A DNA stretch of 64,000 nt from Gracilinanus agilis. Taxonomy: Eukaryota. Below, piece by piece: positions 28,902-59,765 of the stretch. A program made the position numbers and the translations under genes. The stretch is taken from NCBI RefSeq assembly GCF_016433145.1, contig NC_058132.1, positions 88,270,260 to 88,334,259 on the forward strand, read 5' to 3'. The number at the start of each line of letters is the position of its first letter. The first letter of the stretch is position 1. The notes below the pieces were generated by a model. It saw nothing but the letters and a program-made list of their open reading frames with translations. It did no database searches and had not been told where the DNA came from.

Positions 28902-29846
28902 TCAGAGTTTAGTCACAGAGAATAACCTGATGAGCCTCCGACGGATCTCCTTTGTCTTGATGGAATAGATGACAGGATTGAGCATGGGAGGGACAAAGAG
29001 GTAGACAAGGGACATTAGTGTGTGCACAAATGGTGGTGCAGATCTTCCATAGCGGTGAACCATGGATACACTCACCATGGGCACATAGAAGATAAGTACT
29101 GCGCATATGTGAGACACGCACGTATTGAGTGTTTTAAGTCGTTCTTCTTGGGAGGCGATAGCCAGCACAGAGTAGAGGATAAGAATATAGGAGAGGAGGA
29201 TGAGGGCAGAATCTAGAACAAAGGTGGAGATAACAATGCACAGGCCAAAGACATTATTTATAGTAATGTCCCCACAGGGTAGACGGATAAGGTCTGGGTG
29301 TAGGCAGTAAGCATGGGACAGGATGTTGGCTTTGCAGAAGGGCAGACGCTTCAGGAGGAAAGGCATTGGAAAAACCACACAGAAACTGCGAATACCAATG
29401 AAGAGGCTCATTTGTGCCACTCGGGCATCAGTGAGAATGGTAGAATACCTCAGTGGGTTGCAGATAGCTACATAACGATCAAAGCTCATGGCCAATAGGA
29501 TCCCAGACTCCATGAAAGAGAAGAGATGGATGAAGAACATCTGGGCCATACAGGCATCAAAAGTAATCTCCTGGGTATGGAAGCAGAAAGTGGCCAGCAC
29601 TGAGGGCAGTGTGGATAAGGACACACCAAGGTCATTGACTGAAAGCAGAGACAAGAAGTAATACATGGGTTGGTGCAGACTTTGCTCCTCTTTGACAATG
29701 AAGAGAATCAGGCTATTTCCCACAATAGAGACTGTGTAAAAGGCCCCAAGCAGCAGGAACATCCAGTGTTGGGAGGCTTCAAGCCCTGGGAGGCCAGTCA
29801 GGGTGAAGGAAGGTAACTCTGTGCTATTAGTTGTAGAATTTCCCAT
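28902..29846 (-). CDS. Class I olfactory receptor, OR51 family (OR51K-like, subfamily uncertain), intact, 314 aa
   Basis: Full 7TM OR with LTGLPGLE, EEQSLHQPMYYFLS, MSFDRYVAICNPLRY, ASQEERLKTLNTCVSH, PPMLNPVIYSIKTKEIR. A splice acceptor lies just upstream (29867-29869). Confidence 0.88.
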   Translation of the reverse strand: MGNSTTNSTELPSFTLTGLPGLEASQHWMFLLLGAFYTVSIVGNSLILFIVKEEQSLHQPMYYFLSLLSVNDLGVSLSTLPSVLATFCFHTQEITFDACMAQMFFIHLFSFMESGILLAMSFDRYVAICNPLRYSTILTDARVAQMSLFIGIRSFCVVFPMPFLLKRLPFCKANILSHAYCLHPDLIRLPCGDITINNVFGLCIVISTFVLDSALILLSYILILYSVLAIASQEERLKTLNTCVSHICAVLIFYVPMVSVSMVHRYGRSAPPFVHTLMSLVYLFVPPMLNPVIYSIKTKEIRRRLIRLFSVTKL

Positions 29847-29910: not shown

Positions 29911-30417
29911 TTGATTACATCCCTCATTCTGACATTCAAGACTTCCATAATATAAAACTGTTTTATTCAAAGTTATAGCTTACTCTATTGCTCAGCATAT
30001 ACTTTCTACTATATTCAGGTAGGTCTCCTCAACATTCTCTGTCCTCTCCTTGATAATACTTAGAATAACTTCCCTTTGCCTTTCAGTTAATCTTTGTCCA
30101 CAACCTTCTTTAAGGCAGATTCACAACTTAATCCAGGAATCTAAGAATAATAAGGAAATCTTTCCTGTTAACCCTAATCTCTATGGATCTCTTGGCTTTT
30201 TCTGATTGATTATAGTAACTGATAATAAATAATTATAACAATGACAAACTATTAAAATAGTGCTTTGTTTGCAACCATTGTCTGTGTCTTTATATTCCTC
30301 CAATTCCCTCATTCCCTTTTTCCTACTAAATCTCTTTGGCTCAATACTCAAGAACATGGAACAGCAATTTCTCTTGCCTAGTCTTTATCTCTACTTTGGC
30401 CTCCTCCTCTCCTTTCT

Positions 30418-30635
30418 NNNNNNNNNNNNNNNNNNNNNNNNNNNNNNNNNNNNNNNNNNNNNNNNNNNNNNNNNNNNNNNNNNNNNNNNNNNNNNNNNNN
30501 NNNNNNNNNNNNNNNNNNNNNNNNNNNNNNNNNNNNNNNNNNNNNNNNNNNNNNNNNNNNNNNNNNNNNNNNNNNNNNNNNNNNNNNNNNNNNNNNNNNN
30601 NNNNNNNNNNNNNNNNNNNNNNNNNNNNNNNNNNN
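30418..30635. other. Assembly gap (218 N) inside a pyrimidine microsatellite
   Basis: Run of N. Confidence 1.
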
Positions 30636-31129
30636 TTCTTGTTCTTGTTCTTGTTCTTCTTCTTCTTCTTCTTCTTCTTCTTCTTCTTCTTCTTCTTCTT
30701 CTTTCTTCTTCCTCCTCTTCCTCTTCCCCTTTCCTCTTTTCCCTCCCATTTCTCTTTGTTATCAATGTATTCTTGTTCCCCCTTGCTCTCCTTGTCTCTT
30801 CTCCCTCTTATGTCTCCCTTAGTTCTTTTTTTTTCTTTTCCTTCTCTGCTTTTCTCCTTTCCTCATGCTTCTTCCAGAACCATAGAAAGTCACAACTTGA
30901 CTGTTTATTTATGCTCTAATAGACCTTTACCTCAAATTTTTTCTAAGGTTGGGAAAAGTGAAAGCTACTTCTGCCACCTGAATTTCTGAAATTCCCATGG
31001 CTAGGATAGGGTAGAAATTCTTAAACAAGCTGAGTTAGTTATGTCAACAAAAATTTGCTCATAAAATTATGAGAATATCCTCAAAAATATGGTTCATAAA
31101 ATTATAGTTATTGAAACTCAGAACTAGAA

Positions 31130-32040
31130 TTATAGAATCTCAGAATTATAGAGGTGGAAGGGACTTTAGTGACCATTTATTCCAACTCATAACCTCATAT
31201 GAATCTCCTCTTCACCATACCTGAAAAGTAATCATCCAAATATTGCTTTAAGATGCCTAATGAGGCGAACCCCATTATCTCCACCAGCTTTTGAATAACT
31301 TGAATAATGAAAGTTTCCTTATAGCAAACATGTCTTCCATTAATTATTTTTTTCTTCTTGATCTAAGCAGAACAAGAATAATTTCTTTTCCACATGGCAG
31401 ATAGTCTTTTGATCACTTAAAGACAGATATCATCCCTATTTTCTCTTCCTCATGTAAATACCACTAGTTTTTAAACTGAACCTCACGTGACCTGAACTTG
31501 AGATCACTTGCCATCCTGTTTATTATTTTCTAGATGTACCATATCTTATTAATATCCTTACTAAGCTCTGATGGGAAGAACTGAACACAATACCTATGAT
31601 ATAGATATAATCTAACCTGAGAACAATAAGAATATCACTTCCTTCCTAAAACACTATGCCTCTTGTAATGTAGCCTATAATCAATTAACTTTTTTTGGTT
31701 GCCATATTGTACTATTGCTCATATTCACTTGAAGTCTACTAAAATCCCCAGTTCTTTTTTTCATATGAATTGCTATTTATGCTTCAGCAACATAATTATA
31801 CTTGTGAAGGTATTTTTTAACTGGAGTGTAAGATTTTAATTTTTCCATTATTAAATTACATCTTATTTCATGTTTGTCCATCAAATTTTCTTTTGATTCT
31901 GAGTGTTATTCAAACTTAGTTGTCTTTTCTTACTTTTTGCATTTATCCATTTGATAAGCATTTCATCTATGATTTTATCCATGATTCTGATTAAAATGTT
32001 AAGCAGTATAGAGCCAAGTTTATATTCCTGGATCACTCTA
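31130..32040 (-). mobile_element. L3/CR1 LINE 3' fragment
   Basis: AGAATTATAGA..GGAAGGGACTTTAG CR1-type 3' end. Other L3 pieces lie at about 12380-13060, 13680-14300, 34440-35180, 53130-53280 and 54330-54960. Confidence 0.7.
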
Positions 32041-42804: not shown

Positions 42805-43579
42805 CTCTGTATTCCTTCTCTGCAGATTGTACAGTGATTAAACTGCAGACATTTGTTTCCCCAGAGGACATTTGGAAAAGTTTCCAAATCAAACCCATAT
42901 CCACATTATTTTCATAAATGATCAGCTTCACTATTATTCAGAACAGCTCACGTGGTAAATGAGCACACACACACAAAGAACATCACCTGTATCTACCCTA
43001 AGCAAATCGAAGTTTAGGTAGAGAAATGGACTTTCTTTGTTTGAGGCATATATGGGTGTTTTTTTCTTTTCCCCCTTTGGCAGCTGGAGAGATGGGAGCA
43101 TTTTTTTCCCTATTTTTTTTTTTTTTTAAATAGGAGATGGGGCTTGTGTGGGCAGGCCTAAAGTTGGAGCAGGATTTGCTGGTGTTCTCGCTTCTACTGT
43201 CCTTGCCTGAGCCTAGTCCTAAAATTCTTCAGATTCAAGAGGCTAACGCCAAGGCTGGGGCTGGGCTTGGGGAGGAGATGGTGCAGGCCGAGGCCTCTTT
43301 CAGTTTTTCAGTCAGCATGTATTTACTAAGCAATTAATCTAGGTTATGCTGTGGTCAGACGCTGAGTAAAACAGTTCCTGCCCTCAAGTAGTTCACAGTG
43401 GAATGGGGGAGACGATACGCAAACAATTAATGGAAGGACAAGGCTTAGACTAGATGAATTCGGAATAATAAGGGAAAGAAAACTAGCATTCTTTTCAAAA
43501 GTTGCTGTCATTTGCTCCCAGCAAGAGGGGTTCGGTACTATAGTCACAACATGAAGTAAATAGCAAGAGAAATGATTCT

Positions 43580-44760
43580 CCGGAGTTTCTGCGCAGGCTC
43601 CTTTCGATCGCTTCTGCACCAATCACAACACCCCAAGCGATGTGTTGTCTCCTTTTTTCCCCGCCTCCTGCTTCTTTCCCCAACGCGTTCTATAGGGCGC
43701 GAGTGACGTCATCGCGCTCCAGAGTGTGTAACGATATTACGCACAGCGTGCACCGGAAAAAGAATTTCGCCTTCCGTTTTTTGTTCGGCGGTTCTGGCGG
43801 CGGTCCTGTATTTGTCGCGACTTCTCCTCTTCCTCGGCAACCCAACCTCTCACCGTGGTCTGTGATGGGGCGCACGTCGAAAGACAAGCGTGATGTCTAC
43901 TACCGGCTGGCCAAGGAGGAGGGCTGGCGGGCTCGCAGCGCCTTCAAACTTCTCCAGCTGGATGAGGAGTTCCAGCTCTTCAGCGGTGTGAGTCGGGCTG
44001 TGGATCTCTGCGCCGCCCCCGGGAGCTGGAGTCAGGTGCTGAGTCGCAAGCTCGGGGAGGATGGGTCCCCGGCCTGCATCGTAGCTGTGGATCTGCAGGC
44101 CATGGCGCCCTTGCCCGGGGTGGTGCAGATTCAAGGTGACATCACCAAAGCATCCACGGCGCAGGAGATTATCGGGCACTTTGAGGGGGAGCCTGCCGAT
44201 TTGGTAGTATGTGATGGCGCCCCTGACGTCACTGGGCTGCACGACATTGACGAGTACATCCAGGCCCAGCTTCTTCTGGCGGCCCTCAACATAGCCATTC
44301 ATGTCTTGAAGCCCGGTGGGAGCTTCGTAGCCAAGATCTTCCGAGGCCGGGACGTCACCCTACTCTACTCCCAGCTTCGCATCTTTTTCCCGGAAGTGGT
44401 GTGTGCCAAGCCCCGGAGCAGCCGTAACTCCAGCATTGAAGCCTTCGCTGTGTGCCGCGGCTTTGCGCTCCCGAAAGGCTACGTGCCCAGCATGCTGAAC
44501 CCCCTGCTGGACCACAGCTACCACGGGGACTTCAACCAGCTCGAGGGCCCCACAAGGGTCATCGTGCCCTTTCTGGCATGTGGGGACCTGAGTGCTTATG
44601 ATTCAGACCGCACCTACCCACTGCAGCTGGAGGGGGCCCATGAGTACAGGTACACGCCACCAGCACAGCCACCCATCAGCCCGCCCTACCAAGAGGCCTG
44701 CAAACTCAAGAAGTCTGGGTGTCTGGGTCGGTGCACACTGCACCCTGAGTTTTTGTCCGA
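43580..44760 (+). promoter_or_regulatory. CpG island over the FTSJ1 promoter and gene body
   Basis: Dense CpG and high GC in an otherwise AT-rich, CpG-depleted window. Motifs: TGCGCA (43590-43595), CCAAT (43619-43623), GC box CCCCGCCTCC (43659-43668), CRE TGACGTCA (43704-43711), CCGGAA (43753-43758). Confidence 0.85.
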
Positions 44761-44923
44761 TTCCCAGGAGCAGGGATCCACTGAGTCTGAGGAGGATAGC
44801 GAGGATGAGAGCTACAAGGATAGTGACAAGGAGGAGAGCGACAAGGAGGGTGAGGAGGAGGGCGAGGAGGAGGGTGAGCAAGCTCCTGACCAAGCCTCCG
44901 ACTCCCTCACCCAGGACCCCTAG
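43865..44923 (+). CDS. FTSJ1: Intronless FTSJ1/TRM7 tRNA (C32/G34) 2'-O-methyltransferase, 352 aa, probable functional retrogene
   Basis: The ATG at 43865 gives [33 protein letters not shown]. The SAM-binding motif DLCAAPGSW and all four K-D-K-E catalytic motifs (AFK, CDGAPD, VAKIF, SIEAF) are intact. The ORF is uninterrupted, whereas vertebrate FTSJ1 is multi-exon. The 75 upstream codons of the 427-aa track ORF are promoter/5'UTR, not homologous protein. Confidence 0.95.
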
Positions 44924-45126
44924 GGAGGAGTCCCCCCCCCCCCAAAAGGACCTCAGTAAACATTCTTATAGCTTCCAAGGACTGTAATCCTCTAGATGCA
45001 AGCTTTTCCCTTGATTATTTCTCCTACTTGTTGGGTAAACTTAAAGGGCTTGGGACTTTGCCAGAGCCGTAGTTAAGATTGATAGACGTGTTTGTGTGTG
45101 TTTATGTGCCTTTTTATTTACAATTA

Positions 45127-45132
45127 AATAAA
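45127..45132 (+). terminator. Candidate FTSJ1 polyadenylation signal
   Basis: AATAAA about 200 bp after the stop, followed by T-rich sequence. No residual poly(A) tail is visible. Confidence 0.5.
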
Positions 45133-48100
45133 TTTTCTTATTTATGTTAAATTTGACCATTTTCTTCATAATGAAAATTAATTTCATTAATGTCTTTTTT
45201 ATATTGATTAAATTCTTCTCAATATCTCTCCTCCCAGAGAGGCACTCTCTATATAATAGTTTTTATTTTTATTTTTTATAGTAAAGGGAAGATGGGGGCA
45301 TATAGGTACACTTTAGTGGATAGAGAGACTGAGGTCCTATGTTCAAATTTGGTCTCTGACACTTCCTAGCTGGGTACCCTGGGCAAGAAACTTTAACTCC
45401 ATTCCCTATCTTTTATGGCTCTTCTGCCTTAGAACCAATACATAGGATTGATTCTAAGATGGAGTGTGACAGGGCTATTTATTTTTAAAGAGAAGAGAAA
45501 AAGAATCAGTAAAACTTATCACTACTTTGCAAAACTGGGAAAAAATGCAAACTTCTGTACCCCGGAAGGCTCCCAATTTTACAGAGTAATAGGGGAAGAT
45601 ATTTTCTAATATATCTTGGAGTAATTTTTTTTTTTTTTTGTAATTCTATAGCATTCACTTTAAATTGTTTTGTGGTTGTTCTTATCTATATTTGAGTTAC
45701 AGGAGTAGTTTGGCATTTGCTTCCTTTAATAGGAATTAACCAAAGTGCTTTTTGATTGGCAGTTGAGTGACTTGTAATCCTAACCCTTACTTTCTAATTC
45801 CTGTTGATGCATGTTTTTCTTTGTTTAAATTTAGATAATTAGGTACACATAGTTGCAAAATCATCACACTAACTCAGATCCGATTTTTTGTTGTTTCTGG
45901 AGAAACAGGCTGTGAGAAGTATGGGATTATTTGCTACTTCCTTTCCTTTTGCAGCTAACTGCATAATATAAGACTTGGGAAAGAGGGAGTTAACCAGGTA
46001 TTTTCTTCTTAGACAATGGGGGTTAAGTGACTTGCCCAGGGTCACACAGCTGGGATGTGTCTGAGGTCAGATTTGAACCTAGGACCTCACATCTCTAGGC
46101 CTGGCTCTCATCCACTGAGCTATCCAGCTGCCCCTGACGAAGTATTTTAATGTAACAACTAAATAAAATAAAATAATTAAAACCCAACAAGGAGTCAGGA
46201 CATGCCCAGGCTTCAGCAGCAGATCTACAAAGAGTCATATTACTGCAAACTCCTTGTTACCGAGATGCCCTACTTCTATGTGAGGAACTTCCTTTCTGTA
46301 GCCTGCAAACACTTGTTTGTTTTTTATCCCTGAACCCTGTGTCTCACCCATATACCTGAGGGTTTTTCAATTTTGAGAGTTTCTTTAAAATTTTTTTTTA
46401 TTCTGATATAATTCCCAAGCTTTTTGGACATTTATTCACTTTTGTAAAATTTTATTTCAGGTTGGTTAGTTTCAAAATTTTAAAGTCTGAAATAAACACC
46501 TACATTGATTTTATTATGCAATTAACTAATCCTTAAAAGCAAAGGAAATGGCAAATATTCCCATACTTCTCACATGTAATTATATTCAAAATAAATCAAA
46601 ATTCAAATGAGTTAACATTTCTAAAGTTCTTTACAAACTTTAAAGCACTATATAAAGCATGGTATATATATATATGCTGGTAAAACTATAAATTGATAAG
46701 TCTTATGATTTTATCATTAGATGACTTTTATAAGCCTTTACAACTTTTAGTCTGTGAGCCTAAGAATCCTAAGATCCTAAGATATGTAATTTGTTATATT
46801 TCTATCTATAACATACTTTAAAAATTATACTTAAATGATTCAGTAGTTGTATGACACATGAATCTGTCAGTAGGAGCATTCCCTTTGTGGCAGATCTATT
46901 GTCCTTTCAGCTGGTAATATTTTTGTCTATATTTCTGTAAATCACATAGAATTTAACACTTTCTTCCTTTGGTGAAGGTCAGTGAAAAGAGATCTAAGTT
47001 TGGATTTAGATGATTTGAGCTTGAATTTCTACCCACTAAGTACCTAACAAATTTGGGGAAATCATTTCACTTATGTCGTTATTGCTTTGACAGATGAAGA
47101 GGAGAGGAGGGAAGAAGATCCTTCAGGAATCCTCTAAATGCTTCTCCAAGCCTCTGAGTTTCCTCCTAGTTTTTCAGCATCATCTGCTTTGGGAGAAGGA
47201 AAATGGGGATAATGCTGATGAGGCAAGGCAAAGAAACAAGCTGTGGCTTCTTGGGATTGTCTCTACCTGCTCTGTAATAGCTAGCATTTATAAAGGGCTT
47301 TGCCACTTTTTTATTTCCACAGCCACCATGGGTGATATCCTGATTTTATAGTTAAGGAAACTTAAGTAGGATAAGTGGTTTGTCTGGGATCATACAGCTA
47401 TTAAGTGTCTGGGGCTTGATTTGAACTTAAGTTTTCCTGACTATCCAGCACCCTATCCAAAGCACCACCTAATTGCCTTGTAATTATAAAGCTCCCCATT
47501 TCTTGAGATTTAAAGTTTCTTCTCAGCTTTGACTTCAAAATGTGAAAGCATTATTTTCCCAGACTAAATCTTGTATACTTGAATTTTGGGAGTGGGAAAG
47601 GTAATAGTGGTGGTGAAGGAAGGGCTACGGTTTTTATTTTGGAAGAATATAAGAACCAGAGTTACATCTGAGTCTCAGTATCAAGATCTACTGTTCCAGA
47701 AGGGCCAGTGGATCTCTGAGGGATGGCATATTTCAACAACCTAAGAGTCAGCAGAACTAGTCCCTTGTCTTGAGAGTAAGTGGTTCTGTTTTTCATTATA
47801 TCTATTAAATGAACCTGAAGAAATAGTTCTCAACTTTCATTACTGACATTCTGTGGATCTATTGTGAAGTTAGTGCCAGTGGACTTCTACTCAGCTACAA
47901 CTTTAGTAGTAACTGAATGATTCTTTCTCCATGACCTCAGGCAAATCATTTTCCTTTTCTAGAGTTGCAGTTTTCTCTGCAAAATCAAGGAGTTAGATTA
48001 GATAGTCTCTTCTAGTCATAATATGGTACTTTGAGGATTTGTAGAGCACTTCAAGCTCCTTTTTCTAGATACTTCCTCCAAAACATATTTTCCGTAAAGA

Positions 48101-49246: not shown

Positions 49247-49438
49247 GGGGCAGCTGGGTAGCTCAGTGGATTGAGAATCAGGCCTAGAGATGGGAGGTCC
49301 TAGGTTCAAATCCAGCCTCAGACACTTCCCAGCTGTGTGACTCTGGGCGAGTCACTTGACCCCCATTGCCCACCCTTACCACTCTTACACCAAGGAACCA
49401 ATACACAGAAGTTAAGGGTTTGGAAAAAAAAAAAAAAA
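49247..49438 (+). mobile_element. Young SINE1_Mdo-type SINE
   Basis: Full head, poly(A) tail and an 11-bp TSD AGATCATTACA. Confidence 0.95.
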
Positions 49439-51441
49439 AGATCATTACAATTGGTAAGCTCATATCTCCTTTTCAAAAATGTTTGCAGAAACCCGATGCC
49501 CTACTTCACTGGTTTCCAACATTTTTTATTTCATGAAACCTTTTTAACAAAAAGTGACTTGTGAATCTCCAGGGTAATTTAATATATTATTCATAATATT
49601 CTTTTAGATTTATTTATCAAGTAATTACAATAACCACAATGATAGCTGTTGTCTAAAAAGGCTCTAAATTAGAATTTATGTATTATAATTATAAGCACAA
49701 AATTAACTATATGTAATTATGAAAATTAAAATTATAAAACTAAAAATACATACACCGACAGAAAGTCCCCAATTGAGAACAATGTTGCTAACCAATTTAT
49801 TTGAAAATCTACTAGATAGAAAAATGATATCCATATGAGAATAAATTCAAATCAGAAAATCTTAATACTTCAATGAGAGACAAGTGAGAGATGGTTTGAA
49901 GATGGCTCTTAATGAGAATGCTTAATGGTGGTTTTCCAACAAAAAGGTAATTATGCTGCAAGAAAGCAAATGTTTATAGGTGCAACTCTGTCACATGAGA
50001 TGAAGAGGCATATTTACAGGGTAACGAGAGAATAGAGATCCTACTCTGATACCATGAACACAAATGAAGAAATCTTCATGTGTCTAAATATAAATTGGAT
50101 GTCAATTTACCTGGATTGTTGATCCTTGTGGCAGTTTGGAAACAATAAGATGAGAGATTGAGAATCAAAGACTGCATTGAGCTTGATTAGAAGTGATCAG
50201 AGTTTGATGTAGTTTACTGCATGAACAAGAAAATCACATGCAAGATCATGGTGTTTTTAAATCCATGCAGAAATTTAAAAAGCTTCAAACATACACATGC
50301 TTGTTGTCACTGAGAAGAAGCATATATTTGTAACATAATTGGGCAGTCATTTACTACTTAAGATTCTGTTAAGGAATATTTAGCATGAACTCCATGGGGT
50401 ATCACTGAGAACCTCTAAGAAGTTGGTGAATCACAAAATGGAAATCACTGGCCTACCTCCATCTTTTCCCTTCTGTGCTGTAGCACCAGCGTTTTTTTTA
50501 GTTTCTCCTTTTGGTTTCTCCTGTTATTGCCTGTGTGCCCAAAATGCTTTCCAGTTCAACTTATTAAGTCTAAATCAGGTCTGGACCCCACTCTTCCTTC
50601 CTTTCAGGCTGTTCTTTCACAAACATATATTATTTCTCTTAATACTTCTAGGTATCACCAAGGCTCTCTTGTTAAAATTTAGTTCCCATTGCTTTCAGGG
50701 CTACAAAGCAGTGCTTGTCTCTCTGAACTTTAAAATCCTGGAATGCCAGGCAATTCTCAAACCCCTGTTACAATAATAAGAAAATAACAATAGTGCATTT
50801 CCCCCCCATAAACCTGCTGACCCCTCCTTTAAGTAGATACAATGTCAGTGGGAAGAAAGCATACCCTTCGAGAATATGAGTGTAGAAGCAGGTGTGGAAG
50901 GAATATGTATGGCCTGAGCACACCTATGGAAAATGTTGGGAGGGAAACTCTTGCTTCTAACGTTGTAGGGCTGCTGATGTCTTTTAGTCATGATATTATG
51001 TTGCTCTCTGGACCTGTTCCATGATGACTGACTGCTGGACATGATGCCACGGTCTGATTCTCTCTCCTATTCTATCTTTCACTCGCTTAATGATATATAA
51101 AGATAAAGGTTTCAACAGGGATGTACTGTGCAAAGCCAGTTTAACAACCAGCTCTCCCCTTCCAAATGATGAATTCGGTTATATTTTTTAAAGTCTACTC
51201 TGCCTTATTAACGTTTTCTCCATCACTTTTTTTTTAAACCCTTACCTGCTGTCTTAGTATCAGTTTTAAGACAGAAGGGCAGTAAAGAATAAGCAACTGG
51301 GGTTAAGTGACTTGCCTGTGGTCACACCGCTAGAAAGAGTTTGAAGTCAGATTTGAAATCAGGTTCTTCTCAACTTGATCTGGCACCCTATCCATCGTGC
51401 TACCTAGCTGCCTTTTCTCCTTCACTTTCTTAAGTCTAGAC

Positions 51442-52919: not shown

Positions 52920-53117
52920 TTTTTTTTTTTTTTTTTAATTTTAAACCCTTAACTTCTGTGTATTGACTTATAGGTGGAAGAGTGGTAAGGGTAGGCAATA
53001 GGGGTCAAGTGACTTGCTCAGGGTCACACAACTGGGAAGTGTCTGAGGCCGGATTTGAACCTATGACCTCCCGTCTCTAGGCCTGGCTCTCAATCCACTG
53101 AGCTACCCAGCTGCCCC
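52920..53117 (-). mobile_element. Young SINE1_Mdo-type SINE
   Basis: Full length, poly(T) on plus, and a 15-bp TSD TCAAAGTCTCTTCTT. Confidence 0.95.
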
Positions 53118-54989
53118 TCAAAGTCTCTTCTTGAAAGTGGTACTGAGCATGCAATGGTCCAGATGTAGTCCATCCAGGACAGTTTACTGAAGGCCTATCT
53201 CCTTCCTCATTGTGGACACTCCAATCTTTTTAATGGAATCAAAGATTTAATAAGTTATTTTGGCTGATAATGGGGCTATGGTCTCATATTGCTTGCCCTG
53301 TGGGGCTAAGCTGTGCCTAAGAGATCCCATTTATTCTAGCTGGAGTTAGCTAGGAGATACAGTGTGTAGGATGGTGGATCTGAAGACAGGGAGACCTGAG
53401 TTCAAATCTGATCTCATATAATTTTTGTTCTTGAGTCATTTTTCAGTTGTATCCTATTCTTTATGATCCCATTTGAGTTTTTCTTGGCAAAGATACTGGT
53501 GTGGTTTGCCATTTCATTCTCCAGCTCATTTTACAGATGAGGAAACTGAGACCAAAACACACTGAGACCAAAACAGTTACATAACTAGTAAGTGTCTAGG
53601 GCCATATTTGAACTCAGGAAGATGAGTCTTCCTGACTCCAGGCCCAGCACTCTTACTAGTTGGGTAACATCATTTCACCTCTGTTTGCCTCAATTCCTTC
53701 AGCTATAAACTAGAGATAAAAGTATTACCTATTTCATATGTTTGTTAAGAGAATCAGATGAGGAAATATTTGTCTTTAGCACAGTGCCTGGCACAAAATA
53801 GGGACTGAATAAATATTCCCTCCCTTCCTCAAAGAGTTCAAGTTATCAAGATTGGATGAACTAGATTATTAGATACTAAGGAACCCTAGCAAATGTGTTT
53901 GTAGAGCTGGTGATCTTTGAAAAGTTTTGTCAAACAGGAGAAATGTTCCAATACCTGAAAAAGACAACAGTCCAGATTTTTTTATAAAAAGGAAAGATTT
54001 CATTCTTTAATTTATAAGCTGATGAACTTAAATTTTGGTTCTTAACAAAATCTATGATGTGCTTTGAAAAGAAAGCACTTTTAAAAAATGAAGAATAAGA
54101 ACAGTGGTCACTAGGATCTAACATGGATCCATCAGAAATAAATAATTTCAGTCAAATCTTATTTCCATTTTGCCTTAGTCGGTCAGTAAATAAACTTCTG
54201 TTAAGCACCATAGCACCACCTTTGCTTAGCTCAATACTAAACATGAAAAAGAAAGATGTTCACTACCCTCAAGATGCTTATAGTTTAATGGGGGAAGGAA
54301 CATAGAAAAGGAAACTGAAAAGTGGAGATGGATTTATTATACTTAGATTTTAGAAAGAAATTTGACAGCATCTTGCATGATAGGTGGGAAAATGTAGGCT
54401 AGGTGATGGGAAGTTTGGTGGCTTTAGAACTCGCTGAAAAACCAGATCCAGAGTAGTGAAAATGGATTGATATCAACCTTGAAGCAGGTCTCTAGTGGAT
54501 TATCCCAGCAGTGACAGAGAGCTGAGTTAGATAAGTAGGATTTAGGATACATTAAAGTTATAACTGAATAACTGAACTAATGGAATAAATTCCAAAAAGT
54601 AAAAGATACTAGAAATAAATATAAAGTACCAAGATCACATTCAAGATGGAGTGGTATGGCACAATTCATTTGGAAAAGATCTGGGTATTTTAGTGAACTT
54701 CATCTTCAATATGAGTTACCAGTGTTACACCATAGTCAGAAAAACTAATGACCTTAGGTTGTGTTAATAGAAAAATTATGTCAAGAATGAGGGAAATTAT
54801 AGTCCTTTTTTCTCTCTTGGTCAGGCTATATTTGAAGTATTATTGTCAGAAAGACTGAGAAACTGAAAAGTCTCCTGAAGAAGAGGAACAAAGGGCTAAG
54901 TAGATAAGAAACTAGGACACCCAAGGATGGGTTGTAGGAATTAGGGATGTTTATCCTGGGGAAGATGCACAGGTTACTTTTTTATGTTT

Positions 54990-55875: not shown

Positions 55876-57979
55876 AAAAAAGAACAGAATAATTAAAAAA
55901 AAACTTAGAAAGACCTACATGAAATTATGACATGTAAAGTAAGCAGAACCAAGAGAACATTATATGCAGCAAAAGAAATTGTTTGAAAAATCAGTTATTT
56001 GTGTCCACCTCCAGAGAAAAAATTGATAAATAGAAACAAGCAAGACATAATTTTATATATACATATATCTTTTATCTTTTCTTTTCTTTTTCTTTTTCTT
56101 TTTCTTTTTCTTTTTTTTATTTTTTTTATTTTTTTTTTTTGTCAAATGGTACCTTCTCTAGTGCCAGGAAAAGAGGTAGGGATAGAGGGTGTTATCTGAG
56201 AATTAACTTGTCTTCAATGCTACTTCTGATGGTGGTGGTGGTTTTTGTTATGGTAGTGGTGACATTTCAATTCAGGAAGCACTTAACAATGCCTCTCATG
56301 TGTCAAGAACTGCTCTAAACATTGGTGGTTTGAAAACAAAAAAGAGACTTCCTTATGCAGGGAATATGGTTTATTTTTCAGAAGCTAGGAGATTGGTTTA
56401 TTTATGGAATGCCTTCCTTTTAACAGCCTTGTGAGTTAATAACTGTAAGTATTTTTACATGAGCTTTATAGATGAATTAAATATGACTCAGTGGGGATTT
56501 GCTTAAAATCACTCAAGATTGTCTGTGGAGGAATTGTTAAATTTTCCTGTTGACTCTCCAGTGTACATGGAAATTGCAGAGAAGCAAATTTTGGTTTAGA
56601 GAACACTTCCAAGTAACCAAGGCAATCCAAAAGGATCAGGCTGCTCTGAGTGGTAATAGATGTTTGTTACTAGTGTTCTTCTAGAAGAGGCTGGATGTGT
56701 TTTTGTTAGAGGGATTGTAGAGGGATTGTTGGTCATTTCGAAGCTGGACTGGATGCCCAGAGAAATTGCATTGGTAATGGGAGTTTCCCCATCAGGACAT
56801 TACCATACAAGTTAAATTTCAGGTCTAGTCCAACCCAAACCATTCTTGTTTTACATAAAGTGATAATTATTACATTTTCACAGTTGTGTTTGAAGGAAAC
56901 ACTATGCAAACTTAAATCTCTCTATAAATGTCCACTATTGTATTGCTGAGGTCTTTTCCAGTTCTGAGATCAAGCTATTTTGCTAAGAGACAGAATTTGA
57001 GAAGTTTTGGATAGCCCTCTTGTCACTTTCCCTTTGTGATGTAGAAAATAAGCTCTAATTATATACTATCTGAACAATCTTCAGATGTTTCACCTATTCC
57101 TCACAGTGGATGTCTGAGTCAAGGAGGGTGAATCCCATGGAGACTCCTGACCTTCCATCCAAACATATTAAGTTAACATCTGGTTTAATAACCTGTCACC
57201 TTAAACTCTGATTAGCATGAATCAAGCCTAAGGAACCCAATCTACCAATAAAAATTTGGTAGAACACATTTGAACTATTATGTTCAGTTCTGGATGCTAC
57301 ATTTTACTAAAAATTTGAAGCCCAAACTCAGAATTTGTCAAAGCACTAAATTCTCATCCTCTAATTAATAGTTGTTTGTAGTTCAACCTTTGAAATCAAA
57401 AGTTGTTTTTATTTTTAAATTAGAAATGATGGCTCTAATCTTTATCTGAGAGCAGTCAGATGGTGCAATAAAAAGAGCTTCGGAGTCAAGAAGACCTGAG
57501 TTCAAATCCAGCCTCAGATATTTATTAGCCCTGTGATGGACAAGCCATTTAACTTTTGCCTCAGTATACTCATCTGTAAAATGGAGATAATAATAGCACC
57601 TACCACTTAAGGTTGTTTTGACAATCAAAGGAGATAATATCTATAAAGTGCTTAGCGCAGTGTCTGGCACATAGTGGGTCCCACACAAATGTTAGTTATT
57701 ATTATTATTTTTATCATCATCATCACCTTCATCACCACTATCATCATTATCATTGAAGGGGTCCAGGACAGCAAACTCTATTAAAGTCCCATCTTCCATT
57801 AATATTTTGTGTATCCTTGGGAAAATCCCTTCTAGTTTCTAGATCTCAGTTTCTTTAGTTGTAAATAAAGGAGTTGAATGAAATTCTCTCTAATATTCCT
57901 TCATATCTACATGATTTCAGACAAACACAATGAAAACTTCAGGATTTTATAAGATTCTCTATTATAATTTAGTCTATGA

Positions 57980-58770: not shown

Positions 58771-59733
58771 CTAAACCCTGACCCTCTTTCTAGAGAACAC
58801 ATGGATGATGCCTTTGCGTATCTCCTTGGTCTTGATGCTATAGACAATTGGGTTAACCACGGGTGGGAAGAAAAGGTAAATATTGGCCATGGTAGGTTGC
58901 AGCACAGAGGGGAGGTGTCGCCCAAAACGATGGACCATGGACAGACCAATCATGGGTACATAGTACACAAATACAGCACAGACATGTGAGCCACACGTGT
59001 TGAGGGCTTTCCAACGGCTCTCCCCTGAGGCAATCCTCAATACTGTGTGGAGGATGAGCACGTAGGAGACAATGATGAGTAGGAAGTCCAGCCCAAATGT
59101 GGAAATTACGATGAAAAGTCCATAGATGTTGTTGATGGAAGTGTCGGCACATGGTAAGTGAACAAGGTTAGGGTGCAGGCAGTAGGAATGAGAGAGGATG
59201 TTGTGTCCACAGAAGGGTAAGCGCTGGAGTAGGCCGGTCAGTGGGGCCATGAGCACCACACTCTTGAGAGTAACTGTGGCACCTATTGAAATTATTCGGG
59301 GCAAAGTCAGTATGGCTGTATAGCGTAGTGGGCTATAGATGGCCACAAAGCGGTCCATGGACATAGCCAGCAGGATACCCGATTCCATGATGGAGAAGGA
59401 GTGAATAGAGAACATCTGGAGCAGACAGACATGGAAGTTGATTTCAGTTACATCAAAGAGGAAAATTCCCAACACAGTGGGAAGTGTAGAAACAGAGATG
59501 CCAAGTTCAGCAAGGGCCAACATGGCTAGGAACAGGTACATGGGCTGATGCAAGGTGGGATTCATGTGGATGACATGGAGGATGGTCCCATTTCCAAGGA
59601 ATATGATGACATACATCAGACAGAAAGGGATTGAGATCCAGATGTGTTCAGCTTCCATCCCAGGAATGCCAGCCAAGATGAATGTTTTAGGTGTGAACCC
59701 CACTATCGGACCAGAGCTATTACTAGTCTGCAT
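58771..59733 (-). CDS. OR51J1: Class I olfactory receptor, OR51J1 ortholog, intact, 320 aa
   Basis: The track ORF starts at a GTG (59751); the real ATG is at 59733 (MQTSNSS). IIFLGNG.ILHVI, LHQPMYLFLAMLALAE, KALNTCGSHVCAV, ANIYLFFPPVVNPIVYSIKTKEI and the C-terminal KRVRV match human OR51J1 as recalled. Confidence 0.87.
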   Translation of the reverse strand: MQTSNSSGPIVGFTPKTFILAGIPGMEAEHIWISIPFCLMYVIIFLGNGTILHVIHMNPTLHQPMYLFLAMLALAELGISVSTLPTVLGIFLFDVTEINFHVCLLQMFSIHSFSIMESGILLAMSMDRFVAIYSPLRYTAILTLPRIISIGATVTLKSVVLMAPLTGLLQRLPFCGHNILSHSYCLHPNLVHLPCADTSINNIYGLFIVISTFGLDFLLIIVSYVLILHTVLRIASGESRWKALNTCGSHVCAVFVYYVPMIGLSMVHRFGRHLPSVLQPTMANIYLFFPPVVNPIVYSIKTKEIRKGIIHVFSRKRVRV

Positions 59734-59765
59734 GATGGTATCTTGCACCACAGTAATAGTTTTGC

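Follow-up and report, generated by a model that had tools for sequence, protein, structure and literature searches.

The closest described counterparts of the locus treated here are the orphan retrogenes of mammals, exemplified by RNF113A, MARS2 and TRMT12, the last a tRNA-modification gene (Ciomborowska et al., 2013, PMC3548309; Carelli et al., 2016, PMC4772013), of which nine out of ten are reported to possess a CpG-island promoter (PMC4772013). A second set of related cases concerns the X chromosome, which marsupials silence in male meiosis, and in the opossum old retrogenes derived from the X are strongly over-represented (Potrzebowski et al., 2008, PMC2276528). Here, we describe an intact, intronless FTSJ1 (TRM7) gene lying within a cluster of class I olfactory receptor (OR) genes in a stretch of 64,000 nucleotides from Gracilinanus agilis, hereafter called the window. 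A preliminary description of this DNA had proposed an old retroposed copy that either backs up an X-linked parent or has replaced it. We consider, with a probability of roughly 0.85, that the gene is the functional FTSJ1 of marsupials and an orphan out-of-X retrogene, replacing an X-linked parent that has decayed. The coding sequence (CDS) is the following.

43865..44923, plus strand: single-exon FTSJ1 (TRM7) CDS, from ATG to TAG, 352 amino acids (aa) plus stop.

This frame is nested in a longer, mechanically called open reading frame (ORF) starting at 43640; it is uninterrupted and encodes a full-length FtsJ domain (Pfam PF01728, residues 21-200, model positions 1-181 of 181, E = 3e-54). The closest solved structure is that of human FTSJ1, determined with its partner (8y2o_B, E = 4.5e-159, residues 1-289), followed by yeast Trm7 (6jp6, E = 7e-89), and the paralogues trail at ~1e-44 for Spb1/FTSJ3 and ~1e-30 for MRM2; the window protein is closer to FTSJ1/Trm7 than to FTSJ3/Spb1 or MRM2 also in the TRM7-specific region after the domain, an extension conserved to about residue 290. 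The S-adenosylmethionine (SAM) motif and the residues K28, D117, K157 and E192 are unchanged in all the sequences of a 15-species alignment; the preliminary description had noticed both motifs intact in this 352-aa, single-exon enzyme. In databases the gene already carries the name FTSJ1 (NCBI protein names). By homology, its product would perform the SAM-dependent 2'-O-methylation of tRNA positions 32 and 34 together with the partners THADA and WDR6.

Selection on the gene is evident from pairwise NG86 comparisons of four marsupial copies, in which the ratio of nonsynonymous to synonymous divergence (dN/dS) amounts to 0.04-0.12 for the whole gene and to 0.02-0.06 for residues 1-290, with dS between 0.24 and 0.76. 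These values, far below 1, support a functional gene, one that purifying selection has strongly constrained. Over the core (residues 1-290), identity is 84% to echidna FTSJ1, 97% to that of Monodelphis and about 80% to the eutherian proteins, so that the "many substitutions" noticed at first were overstated. At the sites invariant in echidna and five non-mammals, 11 are altered in all marsupial copies and 22 in two eutherians, and five of them carry an identical substitution in both groups, which points to changes made on the therian stem. The marsupial copy has thus diverged less than eutherian FTSJ1, and, judging from this alignment, a burst of change after retroposition did not occur. As to expression, three sequencing runs of the genome's own study, with 60-91 M letters of contigs, contain 96-97% of sampled CDS words and, when 442 nt of flank is added, 83-85%, while a genome-sized run gives 96% for both. 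The three runs are transcriptome-sized but listed without a stated kind, so this pattern, which is what transcripts would give, is an indirect indication; broad expression of the retrogene is presumed.

The retroposed nature of the gene emerges from comparison with the echidna, whose FTSJ1 (locus L003) lies beside PORCN, a 461-aa MBOAT gene identified by protein search, and spans 5.3 kb with ten coding exons and nine GT-AG introns. The echidna CDS was rebuilt exactly from its ten exons, with junctions after codons 40, 63, 95, 121, 139, 157, 191, 219 and 254; the window ORF is unbroken at all nine of these positions, and blastn between the window and the echidna locus returns exon-sized matches only. 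Since all nine introns are absent and the ORF is continuous through the junctions, in a locus unrelated to the parental one, the retrocopy of a multi-exon parent proposed in the preliminary description is supported by this sequence comparison.

The insertion is old and shared across marsupial orders. The top protein matches are the NCBI-named FTSJ1 of Monodelphis, Antechinus, Sminthopsis and Macrotis, and the 90% clusters of these matches add Dromiciops, wombat, Petaurus, Trichosurus, tammar and koala, as well as the window protein itself. The gene span equals the CDS length, that is one exon, in Monodelphis, Antechinus, Sminthopsis, Macrotis, wombat and Dromiciops; in the last two the called neighbours are olfactory receptors. 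In addition, the non-coding flanks on both sides are collinear by blastn with the Antechinus, Sminthopsis and Dromiciops loci. Because single-exon orthologues occupy the same OR-flanked locus in several orders, the insertion predates the marsupial radiation, in agreement with the old age first suggested, and one insertion before the didelphid/Australasian split would explain the shared locus, flanks and untranslated features. The window species groups with the didelphids, its core being 97% identical to that of Monodelphis, with which it also has an acidic tail in common. The retrogene contains the therian changes S4T, I11V, T144A and V195A, and the marsupial-specific N209S is found both in the retrogene and in the koala remnant of the parent described below ("PSML", against PNMA in echidna and PDL- in eutherians); the presence of therian-stem changes in the copy and of N209S in the koala remnant indicates that the copy was made on the marsupial stem. 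The FTSJ1 of the bilby (Macrotis lagotis) is an outlier, with a core identity of 86-89% against 93-98% for the other marsupials.

The ancestral locus was approached through PORCN: marsupial PORCN proteins were found by using a 37-residue echidna PORCN exon and then the full PORCN as queries. The chromosomes carrying PORCN measure 78.3 Mb in koala, 86.6 in Antechinus, 89.4 in Monodelphis, 89.9 in Sminthopsis and 103.0 in tammar; in the Antechinus and Sminthopsis assemblies they come last in the numbering of chromosome records. PORCN is accompanied by EBP and TBC1D25, to which HDAC6 and GATA1 can be added in Monodelphis, all of them genes belonging to the X-conserved region. In the human genome, FTSJ1 lies proximal to RBM10. 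The border of the X-conserved region has been placed at RGN/RBM10, in human Xp11.23 (PMC3820666). Since the ancestral neighbour PORCN is on chromosomes of 78-103 Mb and the intronless FTSJ1 on sequences of 428-934 Mb, an X-linked parent and an autosomal retrogene are supported. No annotated FTSJ1 is found beside PORCN in any of four marsupial species.

Remains of the parent are nevertheless still readable there. A nucleotide profile of the FTSJ1 CDS (nhmmer) finds matches within 3 kb downstream of PORCN, collinear and on the minus strand, and the rest of each locus yields no match. The koala E-values are 9e-4 for exon 2, 1.4e-7 for exon 4, 1e-3 for exon 5, 4.4e-16 for exons 6-7 and 1e-4 for exons 8-10; in Antechinus they are 7e-4 for exon 5, 1.2e-7 for exon 7 and 1.2e-6 for exon 10, with weaker matches for exons 1 and 3-4; in Sminthopsis exon 10 reaches 4e-6 and the other collinear matches are weaker. 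Under a stricter tblastn chain test the scores were 88.5 and 125.9, the null maximum being 74.6 over 152 tiles, whereas a permissive chain score did not separate the relic signal from null sequence and a six-frame hmmsearch of the X loci with the protein profile gave no significant match. The relic stands tail to tail with PORCN, as does echidna FTSJ1, and retains splice signals at ancestral borders (...CTG|GTGAGT at the end of exon 7 in koala; AAG|GTAA at the end of exon 6; in all three species, exon 4 bounded by CAG| and |GT), which identifies it as the intron-bearing parent rather than as another retrocopy. It is badly damaged: both dasyurid relics have ACG in place of ATG, deletions of 18 and 9 nt in exon 1 and a frameshifting 17-nt deletion in exon 4, the koala relic has lost four SAM-motif codons through a 12-nt deletion, and the relics contain in-frame stops and several exons beyond detection. 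The X-linked, intron-bearing parent first postulated has been found, beside PORCN and on X-sized chromosomes, and in each of koala, Antechinus and Sminthopsis, which represent two orders, it is a pseudogene. Furthermore, no second intact marsupial FTSJ1 protein occurs among the best 120 of 6828 matches, in which echidna and eutherian proteins are present.

The region around PORCN offers further observations. The longest Monodelphis PORCN model has 601 aa over 11 kb, compared with 461 aa over ~3.4 kb in dasyurids and koala; it stops 327 nt from HDAC6, and its extra 3' exons span the interval expected for the FTSJ1 relic. Between FTSJ1 and PORCN the echidna has a 417-aa Solute_trans_a (PF03619) gene (L003, 16649-18724, minus strand); the marsupial loci, in which the FTSJ1 relic ends ~0.4 kb from PORCN, have no called counterpart of it, and one database protein (P0131) is a fused model of the Solute_trans_a gene and the C-terminal half of PORCN. 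In the marsupial loci L005, L006 and L007, TBC1D25 and EBP are upstream of PORCN on the opposite strand, and the FTSJ1 relic converges on PORCN as in echidna. In human, the order is presumably FTSJ1-PORCN-EBP-TBC1D25, all on one strand, and the difference implies a small eutherian inversion. The bilby PORCN is on a sequence of 704.7 Mb, a placement consistent with the X-autosome fusion known in this species. In koala, a 119-aa ORF belonging to no Pfam family (L007, 16956-17315, minus strand) is called in a CpG island upstream of the relic and on its strand, and includes the 40-nt block matched by the upstream region of the retrogene; the old parental promoter may still drive a transcript in this species.

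The series of events would be as follows. Ancestrally, FTSJ1 would have been a neighbour of PORCN within the part of the therian X that is conserved; a spliced mRNA of this multi-exon gene would have been reverse-transcribed and inserted into an autosomal class I OR cluster on the marsupial stem, after the split from eutherians and before that between American and Australasian marsupials. The copy, with a CpG-island promoter perhaps partly inherited from the parental 5' end, would have come under strong purifying selection, and the X-linked parent would later have decayed to a pseudogene. The orphan retrogene would carry the whole FTSJ1 function in all tissues, as it must if it is the only intact copy, and a plausible reason for the success of the autosomal copy is its escape from meiotic X silencing. 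It is on this last step that the strongest alternative bears, according to which a broadly expressed retrocopy simply made the parent redundant and chance picked the decaying copy, with no role for X silencing. Orphan retrogenes have arisen from autosomal parents as well, and the CpG-island promoters reported for nine of ten are in keeping with such a neutral relocation (PMC4772013); the over-representation of old X-derived retrogenes in marsupials points instead, indirectly, to selection for export (PMC2276528). We hold this neutral account to be a serious contender, at somewhat less than even odds.

Far less probable is that the retrogene is a backup, the other of the two possibilities in the preliminary description, in which the X-linked multi-exon FTSJ1 would be intact in didelphids and the autosomal copy would mainly supply spermatocytes during X silencing, as PGK2 does. 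Out-of-X retrogenes with a surviving parent are the common pattern in opossum (PMC2276528), and the CRE palindrome of the promoter, described below, would suit germ-line expression. The parent is dead, however, in koala and two dasyurids; the Monodelphis FTSJ1 proteins among the matches are models of the intronless gene only, and in the annotation of that species PORCN is directly followed by HDAC6, with no FTSJ1. A sole copy in a housekeeping role agrees with the CpG-island promoter and with so low a dN/dS. Replacement is thus the part of the initial proposal that stands, and we regard backup as improbable.

Some points weigh against an orphan out-of-X retrogene. Loss of the parent in didelphids, including the window species, is argued from the Monodelphis annotation and the protein search. 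The identification of the PORCN chromosomes with the X relies on size, accession order and known gene content. The enzymatic activity of the product is argued from conservation. Across the exons compared, the koala and dasyurid relics have no frameshift in common; what they share are substitutions, such as V164L, at positions that are otherwise invariant, a pattern compatible either with a single early death of the parent or with deaths in parallel. Finally, a poly(A) tract and a convincing target-site duplication (TSD) were looked for around the window gene and none was found, as already noticed in the preliminary description. An insertion that predates the marsupial radiation would not be expected to have kept them, and their absence is therefore uninformative rather than contrary. 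A candidate TSD (43113-43142 / 45268-45297, 77% over 30 nt, T-rich) was dismissed as a chance match of low complexity.

The missing poly(A) tail and TSD, which would have proved an RNA intermediate, would also suit a translocation of the gene to the OR cluster at the DNA level followed by loss of all introns in place; such a history is very improbable, as it would have to account for nine coding introns all precisely absent, for the lack of ancestral flanking synteny at the OR locus and for the intron-bearing remnant retained at the ancestral one. A dead recent retrocopy, a misassembly or a contaminant can hardly be entertained, given orthologues with collinear flanks in independent assemblies of several orders, a dN/dS far below 1 and the 96% of sampled words in the genome-sized run; together with the remnant on the X, these results answer the objections raised in advance by the preliminary description, namely neutral evolution, lack of an X-linked parent and artefact.

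The regulatory region of the retrogene, in which a CpG-island promoter and a downstream AATAAA had been noticed, includes the features listed below.

43600..43900, plus strand: CpG island by observed/expected CpG ratio, presumed promoter and 5' untranslated region (UTR).
43612..43638, plus strand: upstream block TTCTGCACCAATCACAACACCCCAAGC, 27/27 identical to Sminthopsis, with a CCAAT box at 43619-43623.
43704..43711, plus strand: palindrome TGACGTCA of the cAMP-response element (CRE)/ATF type in the CpG island, ~155 nt 5' of the ATG.
43499..43538, plus strand: conserved block of ~40 nt, 326-365 nt 5' of the ATG, kept in four marsupial retrogenes.
44924..45150, plus strand: 3' UTR, with AATAAA at 45127-45132 and no poly(A) remnant after it.

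The island itself is clear, with an observed/expected ratio of 1.44-1.46 at 43600-43899 against 0.14 for the whole window, and the 400 nt 5' of the ATG reach 0.88-0.93 in Antechinus, Sminthopsis and Dromiciops; its function as a promoter is presumed. The first block is conserved in a four-species alignment, and its CCAAT box is a putative NF-Y site. The CRE-like palindrome lies in the column block GAGTGACGTCATCGCG and is nearly conserved, as TGACGCCA in Dromiciops and TGACGTAA in dasyurids, so that a CRE/ATF function is conceivable. At the other end of the gene, the AATAAA is the first plus-strand copy past the stop, and its position is conserved in other marsupials, in line with about 170 nt 3' of the stop being alignable across four of them; the hexamer alone is weak evidence because the window contains 149 copies.

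The block at 43499-43538 is of interest for the origin of this promoter. Its similarity to the CpG island upstream of the X-linked relic is weak (blastn, E = 0.006-0.05; nhmmer, on the relic's strand, E = 0.0016 in koala and 0.052 in Antechinus), and these matches do no more than suggest that it could be left over from the 5' exon or promoter of the parent; its core resembles a YY1 motif, and the match to the relic's island could be convergent. The upstream region of the retrogene has no similarity to the echidna 5' region, and promoter inheritance cannot consequently be judged from that species. In its most extended form, the interpretation would hold that Cm32/Nm34 methylation in all living marsupials depends on the autosomal retrogene, bearing part of the parental CpG-island 5' end in 43499-43538, and that it owes its fixation to the cost of an X-linked FTSJ1 under meiotic X silencing; this we regard as rather less likely than not.

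The C-terminal end of the protein evolves differently from its core.

44735..44920, plus strand: loosely constrained C-terminal tail (alignment columns 300-350).

Here dN/dS ranges from 0.26 to 0.88 between marsupial copies and rises to as much as 1.0 in comparison with echidna, and the didelphid tail has evolved almost neutrally. An expansion rich in Ser, Glu and Asp (SEEDSEDES..., poly-Ser in Monodelphis) is common only to the window gene and Monodelphis and absent from the other marsupials, which makes it, on the proteins aligned, a didelphid feature. It is partly built by an imperfect 44-nt duplication inside the tail (44766-44809 / 44829-44872, repeat family D1).

The neighbours of FTSJ1 in the window are four intact receptor ORFs of the 7tm_4 family; the nearest on either side are the following.

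28902..29846, minus strand: nearest upstream neighbour, intact olfactory receptor gene of 314 aa (7tm_4, E = 9e-120).
58771..59751, minus strand: nearest downstream neighbour, intact class I (OR51-like) receptor gene (7tm_4, E = 1e-133).

The latter, the one receptor tested, matches consOR51 with E = 8e-126 and class II consensus receptors with only ~1e-42, which agrees with the class I setting first described; an OR on the same strand is also found 3' of FTSJ1 in wombat and Dromiciops. Two overlapping ORFs of ~218 aa with no Pfam match lie close to the upstream receptor (30260-30989, plus strand, and 30004-31340). The region 30004-31340, adjoining the receptor at 28902-29846, is 70-77% aligned with the Antechinus, Sminthopsis and Dromiciops loci, its orientation being flipped in Dromiciops, and could be a conserved non-coding element or an old repeat. 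Copies of a ~125-nt repeat resembling a short interspersed element (SINE) are present at 46008-46135, 49247-49370, 51293-51412, 52993-53118 and 57482-57640, with numerous further copies at the other marsupial loci and at that of echidna.

Taken as an orphan out-of-X retrogene, marsupial FTSJ1 is a well-resolved export off the therian X by retroposition, a clean but precedented relocation in which the intron-bearing remains of the parent are readable beside PORCN. The locus provides a simple system for studying how a retrocopy in the CpG-poor, tissue-restricted chromatin of OR genes gains or keeps a housekeeping CpG-island promoter. FTSJ1 is an X-linked intellectual disability gene in humans, and the marsupial gene of the same name is not positionally orthologous to it, which matters for comparisons of X inactivation and dosage. 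If the interpretation is true in its most extended form, marsupials would represent a natural experiment in which FTSJ1 became biallelic and autosomal ~80-160 million years ago, with a dead parent that can be dated on the X. No publication was found tying FTSJ1 to "retrogene", retroposition or marsupials in this sense, the orphan table of PMC4772013 standing outside this comparison. Moreover, the screen of Potrzebowski et al. (2008) depended on the presence of a parent in the same genome, and a case like this one would escape it; as screens needing a live parent miss such genes, marsupial X exports are probably undercounted.

In comparison with eutherian FTSJ1, which is X-linked and multi-exon, and with yeast Trm7, the window gene belongs to the same family, with the same domain order and an identical catalytic tetrad and SAM motif; it differs from the eutherian gene in its single exon, its autosomal OR cluster and the didelphid acidic expansion at the C-terminus. 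With PGK2 and the marsupial copies derived from PGK1 (PMC2276528) it shares an X-linked housekeeping parent, an early autosomal intronless copy in marsupials and a proposed benefit, expression while the X is silenced in male meiosis; in those cases, however, the parent survives and the copy is typically testis-biased, whereas the FTSJ1 parent is dead. The resemblance is closer to the orphan retrogenes, in which a multi-exon parent, lost or pseudogenised, has given way to an intronless copy with a CpG-island promoter, purifying selection and a presumed ancestral housekeeping role. The FTSJ1 of the window departs from the other orphan retrogenes in being restricted to marsupials and in having had a parent on the X, whose decayed remains can still be seen at the ancestral locus.

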